From Macrostomum lignano (taxonomy: Eukaryota): DNA of 64,000 bases. This document shows, piece after piece, positions 40,201-43,200 of the stretch. The first letter of the stretch is position 1. The number at the start of each line of letters is the position of its first letter. The DNA is taken from contig NIVC01002430.1 of the NCBI GenBank assembly GCA_002269645.1, forward strand, positions 72,942 to 136,941. The letters run 5' to 3'. The notes beneath the pieces were generated by a model that was not told the origin of the DNA, did not search any database, and saw only the letters and a program-made list of their open reading frames with translations. The position numbers and the translations under genes are program-made.

Positions 40201-43200
40201 AGACAGACAGACAGACACACAGACAGACAGACAGACAGACAGACAGACAGACAGACACACAGACAGACAGACAGACAGACAGACAGACAGACAGACAGAC
40301 AGACAGACAGATAGACAGACAGACAGACAGACAGACAGACAGACACACAGACAGACAGACAGACAGACAGACAGACAGACAGACAGACAGACAGACAGAC
40401 AGATAGACAGACAGACAGACACACAGACAGACAGACAGACAGACAGACAGACAGACAGACAGACAGACAGACAGACAGACAGACAGACAGACACACAGAC
40501 AGACACACAGACAGACAGACAGACAGACAGACAGACAGACAGACAGACAGACACACAGACAGACACTAAGACAGACAGACGACAGACAGAAAGACAGACA
40601 CACAGACAGACAGACAGACACACAGACAGACACACACTCTGACAGACAGACAGACACACAGACAGACAGACAGACAGACAGACACACAGACAGACAGACA
40701 GACAGACAGACAGACAGACACACAGACAGACAGACAGACAGACAGACAGACAGACAGACAGACAGACAGACAGTCACTAAGACAGACAGACAGACAGACA
40801 GACAGACAGACAGTCACTAAGACAGACAGACAGACACTAAGACAGACACTAAGATAGACAGACAGTCACTAAGACAGACACTAATACAGACAGACACACA
40901 GACAGACAGACAGACAGACAGACACTCTGACAGACACACAGACAGACAGACAGACAGACAGACAGACAGACAGACACACAGACAGACAGACAGACAGACA
41001 GACAGACAGACACTAATACAGACAGACACACAGACAGAAAGACAGACAGACAGACACTCTGACAGACACACAGACAGACAGACAGACAGATAGACAGACA
41101 GACAGACAGACAGACAGACAGACAGACAGACAGACAGACAGACAGACCTGTTAATTAGCAGACCTTACCTCAACAGTAACAACCTGCTGCCCCTTAAAAG
41201 TGAAGTCCAGCAAGTTTGGCGTCAATGTCAAATTGTAATTAATCGGCCTCGAATGAGTTGGCAATTTCTTGAATTCAGTTTTGCCGGACATTTTCTATTC
41301 TCAGTAACAATGGCGTCTGTTTTGATTTGAAGTGCGGGTTTAGGCGGTGCAGTGGCAGAAATAAGTTTGAGCAGAACCATTGGCTGTTTTATGTAGGCTT
41401 TTCATAGCAGCACATGCGGTCAGCTGTCACACTGATAACAGGTGCAACAGCAATGCTACACTTTTGATAATTACGATTACTAAGTTTGCTATAGAAGTTG
41501 CAAGCCTATTACGAGCGTTATATTAACTACCTGAAGCTAGCAAAATAGGACACTTAATTAGTGGCATGCACGGGAGTTGAAAAGAAATAATATTAAAGGT
41601 TCTCTATTAACTACATAACGAATTTACACTCCACTAGTGCATAGTACATGTTTAGTTTCGTGACTGATTTCAAAGTATAACTTATCGCTTCATTTAATAA
41701 TGCAGATCTCGTTTGCAAAATTGCTAGGCTATGATTCTTAAGGTTTTCGAGAGTGATTCTTAGAAAATCAAGAAAGTGACTCCACCTGTCAGAAATTTTT
41801 ACTTTTGGTGTCTTTTAGTGACACTATAAATTTTGAGTGTCAGAGAGCTACTTTTTAATCGCCGGAGAGGACTCTTAAAGTGTCAGAAGAGTGACTGATA
41901 ATGAGCCAGGAGAGTAATTCTTAAAGTGTCGAAGAGTAACTGTCAAAATCCCGGGGTGACTCTCAATGTATCAGGAGAGTGACTCTCACAGTGCTGGAGA
42001 GTGATTTTCAAAGTGCCGGAGAGTGACTTAAAGTGCTGAAGAGTGACTCTTAAAGTACCGGAGAGTGACTCAAATTACCGAAGAGTGTCCGTTTCCACCA
42101 TCCCGCAGCATCCCCACCAAGCGGCTTCAGCCGGGCAGCTTCCTTCTGCCGCTAAGCCGCCATCAATCTGCAGGTCCGCTCCGTCGGCTGCTTCTGTGCA
42201 TTGAAGAGGCCGACAGACTGTCTCAGCTGGCCGAAGACCAGGCTGGAGCAGCAGCCGCCGCCGCCTTCCCAACCTCTACCTGGACCCGACTCGAGCTGGG
42301 ACTTCGCGTGGGCGGCTGCCTTCTCTCGCTGACCGCCCTGTCGGCGGCTGCCGTCGCCGCGTTCGCCAAAACCGACGGTCGCCGTCGAAGATGGCGCCGA
42401 CTGACCGCGGCCGAGTTGAACGCCTGCGTGGCATTCGGCCTCGAGGAGGCCTGCGCCGCGGTTGCCAGCAGCATGACAGCCGGCCTGACTGCCTGTCGAG
42501 TGGTTGCCGCGCTCCGGCACTGGCTGGGACTGGCGCGGGCCTGCGCCCTGCTGCTGCTGACGCTGGATCAGTGGCGCCGGCTTCGGCGTCGTCTGTCAGC
42601 ACCGCAGCGTCGGGACGTTCAACAGCAGCAACAACAGCTGCAGCAGCAGCCCGATCAGCCCCATAGGGTTGGTGCACCTTCTGGTGCGGTCAAAGGAGCT
42701 GCCTCATCGCGGCGACCCGGTTTTAACACCAAAGCTCCTAAGTCGTGGTCTTCAACCCATCTGCCCTCGCGTGCCTTCGGCACGGCTGGCAGGGAGACCG
42801 GTTGTTTTGCTGCTGTCTATCTGTCCCGCCTCGTCCTCTTTGCGCTCGCCCTCACTACGCTCGCCGGGGACATCGAAACTAATCCCGGCCCAGCCTGCAA
42901 CTCATGCAACGGCCCAATCCGCACGGGCATGCACAGCCTGCCATGTGAGGTCCCAGAATGTTCCGAGCGCTGTCACTGTCAGAAGAAATGCAGCGGTATG
43001 CACCGCGCCGAGATTGTCCGATCTCCGTGGCGCTGCTCTGTGCACCGCCCCCTTGAATTGGACTCGGCATCCGCTGCGCACCTGCGTGACCTCCCGACAC
43101 CCGAGCCCCGCATGTCTCAGCCAACGCGCTGTCACAGCTGCTCAGGGCCCATCCGCACTGGCACTACTCCGCTCACTTGCGCTGCCAAAGGTTGCGCTCT

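Follow-up and report, generated by a model that had tools for sequence, protein, structure and literature searches.

A predicted hepatitis delta virus-like ribozyme with a split P1 helix at the 5' end of a Macrostomum lignano retrotransposon

Can a self-cleaving ribozyme resembling that of hepatitis delta virus (an HDV-like ribozyme) accommodate two complete hairpins inside P1, its substrate helix? The question is raised by a non-LTR retrotransposon (one lacking long terminal repeats) in a 64,000-nt stretch of Macrostomum lignano contig NIVC01002430.1 (assembly GCA_002269645.1), called here the window, whose own numbering is used throughout. A first-pass annotation had proposed that the first 89 nt of this element (42651-42739) form such a ribozyme, cutting exactly at the element's 5' end. 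Judged from the sequence, 42651-42739 is probably an active self-cleaving ribozyme of the HDV-like type, placed at the 5' terminus of a non-LTR retrotransposon that targets (CAG)n and having its P1 split as shown in Table 1. Ribozymes of this kind are known from the 5'-end processing of R2, Dong and L1Tc elements, and the topology, in which 34 nt forming two hairpins interrupt the P1 5' strand, is best read as new. The reading as 5'-end processing is drawn from the anatomy of the motif, a boundary set independently of it, homologous cores at the same place in related elements, and the uninterrupted P1 of the closest relative.

The element boundary and the predicted split P1

The first base of the element was located by comparing four copies. 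No second copy was found within the window, and three further copies (L001, L007 and L051), in unrelated flanks, were 99.7-99.8% identical across the full element, with 22 variable columns in 4.69 kb among the four copies and none before 42807. The window copy, L001 and L007 were inserted in (CAG)n and had (CAG)n target duplications, and these three, taken by themselves, allow the element to begin at either 42650 or 42651. Copy L051 had a non-repeat target duplication, CCTCAGCAGT, followed directly by CCGATCAG (junction ...CAGCAGT|CCGATCAG), which places base 1 at C42651, an assignment that fits all four copies and leaves C42650 as position -1 of the predicted cleavage site; the L051 junction, from a single copy, is still compatible with a 1-nt 5' truncation. 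In the proposed P1, C42651 also forms the bottom pair, with G42720. The coincidence of the cleavage site with the boundary given by the target duplication, already claimed in the first-pass annotation, was thereby sharpened, and the predicted cut at 42650/42651 coincides with the element 5' end in four independent insertions. These are recently active copies with intact or near-intact open reading frames (ORFs), all with the 34-nt insertion and all with the same start base. L051 has a 1-nt deletion at the equivalent of window position 43251, which shifts the ORF frame and explains its shorter annotated protein (1138 aa).

Every pair in the proposed structure was checked by script. The first-pass annotation had described a P1 of seven Watson-Crick pairs interrupted by two hairpins (8 and 5 bp) without spare bases, a 7-bp P2, P3 GCC/GGC, L3 UCAUCGC, a J4/2 CCAA containing the catalytic C42729, and a reduced P4, and every one of these parts was located where it had been drawn. 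P1 comprised the pairs C42651-G42720, C52-G19, G53-C18, G88-C17, G89-C16, U90-A15 and C91-G14 (last two digits of the positions after the first pair), and two of the eight pairs in hairpin 1 were G.U (U55.G72 and G58.U69). The segment order that is the hallmark of HDV-like ribozymes (P1a-J1/2-P2a-P3a-L3-P3b-P1b-J1/4-(P4)-J4/2-P2b) was present, and was the same in the seven relatives described below. Of the features by which such ribozymes are recognized, a putative catalytic C in a C-N-R-A motif just before the 3' strand of P2 was found (C42729 in CCAA, P2 following directly), as were a GC-rich 3-bp P3 and a roughly 7-nt L3 showing the pattern U...CG (GCC-UCAUCGC-GGC). A continuous P1 of 6-7 bp was not, since 34 nt separate the third base of the 5' strand from the fourth. 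P1.1 offered one possible pair, A42706-U42721, with C and U at its second position.

The insert fills the gap in P1 exactly, with zero unpaired bases between CCG, hairpin 1, hairpin 2 and GGUC. Its folding energy of -17.8 kcal/mol was equalled by 0.08% of 20,000 shuffles, and 2% of insert shuffles folded without unpaired exterior bases. Folded alone, the 5' 72 nt adopted the four-way junction as the minimum-energy structure, its pairs having probabilities of 0.86-0.96. A search for other partners of the 5'-terminal 7 nt returned only another register within hairpin 1, which was rejected; P1 can be completed in no way other than by the split. The three bases that end the P1 3' strand complement the first three of the element exactly, which would occur by chance once in 64, a figure that presumes a boundary set independently by the target duplication.

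These same three bases bear on a reading in which the active core would use only the 4-bp P1 GGUC/GACC, cutting at 42687/42688 and discarding the hairpins as a leader. The hairpins are dispensable for an HDV core, and the covariance model of the relatives (see below) aligned P1 positions 4-7 only. A 4-bp P1, however, lies outside the family range of 6-7 bp (PMC3774820) and would give no role to the three final bases of the 3' strand of P1 in spite of their complementarity to the element's first three; moreover, all four copies keep 42651-42687 directly beside the target duplication, which RNA starting at 42688 could not yield. This reading is therefore considered highly improbable. An origin of the insert as a duplicate of the P3/L3 core, an idea prompted by a peptide-level echo (GAPSGAV versus GAPSRGV in relative L006), was rejected, alignments of 42651-42691 against all cores being no better than shuffles (p 0.6-0.97).

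Table 1. Positions of the predicted ribozyme segments and of other features of the element in the window.
Feature	Positions	Strand	Remarks
Target-site duplication, 5' copy	42640-42650	+	GCAGCAGCAGC, part of host (CAG)n; same 11 nt at 47359-47369
Non-LTR retrotransposon, complete, one ORF	42651-47358	+	4708 nt, 3' (CAA)n tail; ends common to four copies in different flanks
P1 5' strand, part a	42651-42653	+	CCG; pairs with CGG 42718-42720; C42651 is the +1 nucleotide
Inserted hairpin 1	42654-42673	+	AUCAGCCC / GGGUUGGU, 8 bp including 2 G.U, loop CAUA
Inserted hairpin 2	42674-42687	+	GCACC / GGUGC, 5 bp, loop UUCU
P1 5' strand, part b	42688-42691	+	GGUC; pairs with GACC 42714-42717
J1/2	42692-42693	+	AA
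P2 5' strand	42694-42700	+	AGGAGCU; 7/7 Watson-Crick with 42733-42739
P3 and L3	42701-42713	+	GCC/GGC closing L3 UCAUCGC (42704-42710); L3 fits clade consensus U-Y-N-N-C-G-N
P1 3' strand	42714-42720	+	GACCCGG; closest relative GACCCGU
J1/4 and linker replacing P4	42721-42728	+	UU, then 6-nt linker UUAACA
J4/2	42729-42732	+	CCAA; C42729 at position of catalytic C75; seven relatives CGAA
P2 3' strand	42733-42739	+	AGCUCCU
Element ORF frame	42650-47317	+	open from 5' end to stop at 47315-47317; first in-frame ATG 42929
2A-type peptide motif	42869-42892	+	DIETNPGP, in ORF frame; invariant in relatives
3' tail	47340-47358	+	AAAA(CAA)5
Target-site duplication, 3' copy	47359-47369	+	GCAGCAGCAGC

Homologous cores in distant relatives

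Related loci were collected from contigs of distant protein matches, together with 42 loci from a metagenome scan. The relatives came mostly from marine metagenomes, and many shared the N-terminal 2A; in the protein search nothing lay between about 90% identity (the M. lignano cluster) and 39%. Seven distant relatives (L002/L052, L003, L004, L006, L010, L011 and L012; 31-39% protein identity) had HDV-like cores at the same location, upstream of 2A. The common core comprised a 7-bp P1, a short J1/2, P2, a 3-bp GC-rich P3, L3 of the form U-Y-N-N-C-G-N, the P1 3' strand, CGAA and the P2 3' strand. Three of these (L004, L006 and L012) were textbook cores with P4, while L010 (UUUACA) and L011 (GAUCAAA) lacked P4 like the window ribozyme, having a linker of 4-5 nt beyond the 2-nt J1/4. 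The 5' strand of P1 lay 2-7 nt from P2 in all seven, and P2 directly adjoined P3 in six, the exception being L003 with 142 nt between them. P1 was continuous in all seven relatives, leaving the window ribozyme as the only one of eight with an interrupted P1 5' strand. In the closest relative (39% protein identity; copies L002 and L052) the uninterrupted P1 reads ACGGGUC/GACCCGU, compared with CCG^GGUC/GACCCGG here (^ marking the insertion), the sole difference in P1 being a compensatory change at pair 1 (A-U versus C-G).

Covariation had been suggested as a check on the proposed structure, and it was assessed in a gap-free alignment of hand-cut minimal cores of the relatives, from which the window was excluded. 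Paired cells made up 93.8% of the total, compared with 58.8% in shuffles (0 of 500 reached the observed value) and 43-47% when partners were slid. Changes on both sides were seen in 12 of 16 pairs; P1 cells were paired in 55 of 56 cases, with compensatory changes at five of seven P1 positions and at four of four scored P2 positions, and P3 was 100% and P1.1 64% paired. The first P1.1 pair, a possible A-U in the window, varied in a compensatory way (C-G, U-A, G.U). Strong support by covariation was obtained for P1, P2 and P3 across these hand-cut cores of the relatives; for the split of P1 and the hairpins it was not, the four copies being identical there. The HDV-like identity first proposed for the window motif is supported by these covarying cores at the same position, and on such sequence comparisons the HDV-like identity of the clade's 5' motif is regarded as secure.

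Whether the resemblance could be fortuitous, the 5' end being a structured GC-rich leader or coding sequence and neither a ribozyme nor the remnant of one, was judged from the same data. Loose HDV descriptors did give chance matches elsewhere in the window (at 54406, at 16395 and on the minus strand near 43370, all rejected as satellite or unstructured), and Rfam returned no match, but Rfam missed the canonical relatives as well. A P1-independent descriptor (P3, L3 UYNNCG, CNAA and an adjacent P2 of at least 6 bp) had an expectation of 0.23 matches per 128 kb when the window was shuffled, and matched the ribozyme site, in sense and within the first 89 nt of the element, plus one position at 25059. 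The latter match (25059-25130) was judged to be due to chance, being a palindrome (AGA UCUCCGA UCU) that borders a 24-bp satellite and has no retroelement in its vicinity. Together with the seven relatives, whose covarying cores occupy the same position, these counts leave a chance resemblance with almost no credibility.

Several of the other loci showed peculiarities of their own. In L003 (80-291), P1 (UCGGGGU/GCCCCGA) and P2 (GAUGCGU/ACGCAUC) both have 7 bp, and the 142-nt insertion between the P2 5' strand and P3 seems to be structured; it is another unusual insertion site within the same clade, known from one copy. In L006 (983-1045), the closing bases of the (CAG)5 target repeat themselves make up the P1 5' strand, GCAGCAC, which puts the predicted cut inside the repeat; in many R2 elements, likewise, the P1 5' strand is supplied by the upstream target, in that case 28S (PMC3774820). 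HDV-like parses of L005, L013, L015 and L019 were attempted and rejected, none being consistent.

Comparison with known ribozymes and weighing of the split P1

In R2, R4 and Dong (the last specific for (TAA)n), as well as in Baggins, RTE and L1Tc, an HDV-like ribozyme cuts at the 5' junction and frees the element from co-transcripts (PMC3774820). As in R2/R4/Dong, Baggins and RTE, the Macrostomum motif lies at the extreme 5' end, in sense, with its predicted cut at the target/element junction (PMC3774820), and it shares with Dong a microsatellite target, the (TAA)n of Dong being cut at the repeat/element junction (PMC3774820). Unlike R2/R4/Dong, which have a restriction-like endonuclease, the Macrostomum element is APE-type with RNase H, an N-terminal 2A and a (CAG)n target. 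P1 is typically 6-7 bp in HDV-like retrotransposon ribozymes (PMC3774820) and is continuous in R2/R4/Dong, where large insertions are found in J1/2 (23 to >700 nt in R2; PMC3774820), whereas here the insertion lies inside P1.

The absence of P4 has natural precedents (PMC10879173), among them the silkmoth R2 ribozymes (PMC3774820), which the Macrostomum ribozyme resembles in this respect. It is also similar to drz-Mtgn and the theta ribozymes, in which a few nucleotides replace P4 while the rest of the double-pseudoknot core is kept (PMC10879173); those ribozymes are of metagenome or phage origin, have a continuous P1 and are not located at retrotransposon 5' ends. The L1Tc element of Trypanosoma cruzi (ingi clade) likewise has an HDV-like ribozyme in its first tens of nucleotides, APE, reverse transcriptase (RT) and RNase H domains, and an N-terminal 2A (PMC3185411). 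Its ribozyme, L1TcRz, has C at +1, as the first-pass annotation had stated and as in the window, and a P1.1 of 1 bp, the most that the window ribozyme could form, and cleaves at element nucleotide 1, which is also the transcription start (PMC3185411). It differs from the Macrostomum ribozyme in having P4, a continuous P1 and an internal-promoter role (PMC3185411), and in a trypanosome rather than flatworm host; the likeness to L1Tc/Pr77 is an analogy only, of a functional kind (ribozyme plus 2A plus RNase H).

A counterpart to the insert was found in large HDV-like ribozymes such as drz-Agam-2, where an extra helical domain is likewise added on the core's 5' side, near P1 (PMC4908430). In ribozymes of this type a large J1/2 insertion forms a P1.2 domain (PMC4908430), placed after the seventh P1 base, between P1 and P2, and pinching the distal ends together (PMC4908430), whereas in the Macrostomum element the extra helices exit between the third and fourth P1 bases and make a four-way junction of the substrate helix. 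A limited literature search turned up no HDV-like ribozyme with an insertion inside P1; the departures described were J1/2 insertions and loss of P4, which agrees with the first-pass annotation's view that insertions within P1 had not been reported.

If the 5'-end processing reading is right, the element would land in CAG repeats, which are often transcribed, and would itself be transcribed within a longer host read-through RNA. Its 5' end would fold into a nested double pseudoknot of P1, P2, P3 and a 1-bp P1.1, with no P4, P1 being assembled across a four-way junction of 3 bp, the 8-bp hairpin, the 5-bp hairpin and 4 bp. Since the 3' strand is continuous, both halves of P1 could stack as a normal 7-bp helix with the hairpins pointing outward, and the ribozyme would tolerate the insertion. 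C42729 would act as general acid/base for a cut between C42650 and C42651, which would set the exact 5' end of the RNA that is then copied into new insertions by target-primed reverse transcription. The retained 5' hairpins could protect against 5' exonucleases, help to start AUG-less translation upstream of 2A, or serve as a handle for reverse transcription.

A number of observations weigh against an active split P1. Among R2-type ribozymes, a single mismatch in P1 has been associated with activity being lost in vitro (PMC3774820), and trans-acting HDV ribozymes are reported to be sensitive in mid-P1, near substrate position +4 (PMC2835756). The core is minimal, P4 being absent and P1.1 consisting of at most one A-U pair, and J4/2 is CCAA in the window and CGAA in all seven relatives. 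The identity of the four copies over 42651-42806 means that neither the split P1 nor the hairpins show covariation, and the covariation counts for the relatives lean towards structure because their cores were cut by hand via complementarity. Rfam contained no HDV-type family that matched, either in the window at gathering score or in the window region and the relatives at E up to 10, a silence that is uninformative because canonical relatives were also unmatched. A covariance model, R1, built from the seven hand-cut minimal cores of the relatives, was weak (the loci supplying its own cores scored 13-22 bits, six of seven at E up to 1); it gave only a local 7.3-bit match at 42688-42717, aligned to model positions 4-30 (P1 positions 4-7 plus P3/L3), a placement of GGUC and GACC that for its part favours the split P1, and did not recover the ribozyme site in a search of the whole 64-kb window.

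Folding with the repeat flank added a further point of this kind. With the window's own leader of 10-30 nt the probability of the split P1 was about 0.6, while with a 30-nt (CAG)n leader, as in L001 and L007, nested folding favoured a competitor helix of GCAGC-CC with GGAGCUGC that sequesters the 5' strands of P2 and P3, and the probability of the split P1 dropped to about 0. GCUGC at 42698-42702, spanning the P2 and P3 5' strands, is complementary to GCAGC of the target repeat. As nested folding cannot include the pseudoknot, this result flags a possible attenuator and is not a refutation; in this model a long (CAG)n leader could attenuate cleavage through the competitor helix.

The main rival reading takes the motif for a relic, in which an ancestral uninterrupted P1 (NCGGGUC) was inactivated or crippled by the 34-nt insertion, CCG/CGG being inherited and unused, and the uniform 5' end comes from an internal promoter with its start at +1, like Pr77 of L1Tc. 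P1 disruptions abolish activity in other HDV-like ribozymes, covariation for the split is absent, and competition between the fold and the (CAG)n flank is predicted. L1Tc has its transcription start at the very site of cleavage (PMC3185411), so that a precise 5' end alone is no proof of cleavage. On the other hand, a dead ribozyme in a still-transposing element would be free to decay, and all four copies transposed after the insertion arose; yet the rest of the motif is intact, with P1 and P2 at 7/7, P1 fully Watson-Crick, P3 at 3/3, and L3 and CNAA on consensus. In addition, a flush insert with no unpaired junction base is rare for a random disruptive insertion (2% of shuffles). A relic is accordingly thought unlikely, and an active ribozyme with the split P1 remains the favoured interpretation.

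The descriptors generally used to find HDV-like ribozymes demand a continuous P1 of 6-7 bp. Should an RNA with a four-way-junction P1 cut itself, a class of natural ribozymes would be escaping existing searches, the fold's substrate helix would be more tolerant than trans-ribozyme work suggests, and a new site would be available for engineering or regulating the HDV fold. We put at about even the prospect that two things hold together: that an active split P1 represents a new HDV-like topology, giving a processed RNA with three paired bases and two hairpins at its 5' end, and that the element belongs to an undescribed, widespread clade of CAG/CAA-targeting APE-type long interspersed nuclear elements (LINEs) combining an HDV-like ribozyme with 2A.

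The element, its target repeat and its surroundings

CAG repeats appear to be the element's specific target. Of the four insertions, three were in (CAG)n of at least 4 units and the fourth was at CCTCAGCAGT (insertion coordinates 2706-2722 and 7430-7445 in L001, and 1742-1751 in L051), and CAG/CAA runs were also present directly 5' of the ribozymes in the relatives L006, L010, L011, L003, L013 and L052. A 2013 list of microsatellite-targeting LINEs does not include (CAG)n (PMC3812793). What emerges appears to be an undescribed clade of APE-type, 2A-bearing LINEs located at CAG/CAA repeats, with HDV-like ribozymes of varied architecture. An element that inserts at CAG repeats, apparently without an AUG before 2A and with relatives in marine metagenomes, is of interest in itself, and would make a compact system in which to study the translation of an uncapped LINE RNA released by a ribozyme, as well as the means by which a LINE comes to target a trinucleotide repeat of coding type. 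Copy L001 sits in sequence encoding CCHC zinc-knuckle motifs (L001 2400-2560), probably a gag-like ORF of another retroelement.

The product of the window ORF was identical to BOX15_Mlig029675g1, and the locus (L008 in the copy numbering) corresponds to window positions 40874-48817. Pfam matches in the element were Exo_endo_phos, RVT_1 and RNase_H, and the intact element's single long ORF encodes the 2A motif, cysteine/histidine-rich zinc-finger repeats, APE, RT and RNase H. ATG was absent in all frames between the element 5' end and the 2A motif (42651-42929 region), the first in-frame ATG lying downstream of 2A and the frame being open across the entire ribozyme. This frame extends upstream into the host sequence by 201 codons in the window copy, 72 in L007, 10 in L051 and 9 in L001. 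Because no ATG precedes 2A, translation must begin either in the host sequence farther upstream or at a codon other than AUG. An AUG does lie between the ribozyme and 2A in relatives L002, L004 and L005.

A perfect hairpin with a UUCG tetraloop (CGUGCC-UUCG-GCACG) was noted at 42770-42784, 30 nt 3' of the ribozyme, and a weak Rfam match to 'Acido-Lenti-1' consisted of this hairpin only. The retrotransposon lies in a small GC-rich unique island (approximately 42065-42650 and 47370-47560) flanked by two satellite arrays. The window as a whole is a patchwork of some 30 different tandem arrays, whose periods range from 15 to 81 bp (for example at 380-4678, 11493-13954, 17186-20100, 37197-41147 and 60834-62797), plus about 4 kb of (ACAG)n, and (ACTG)n.

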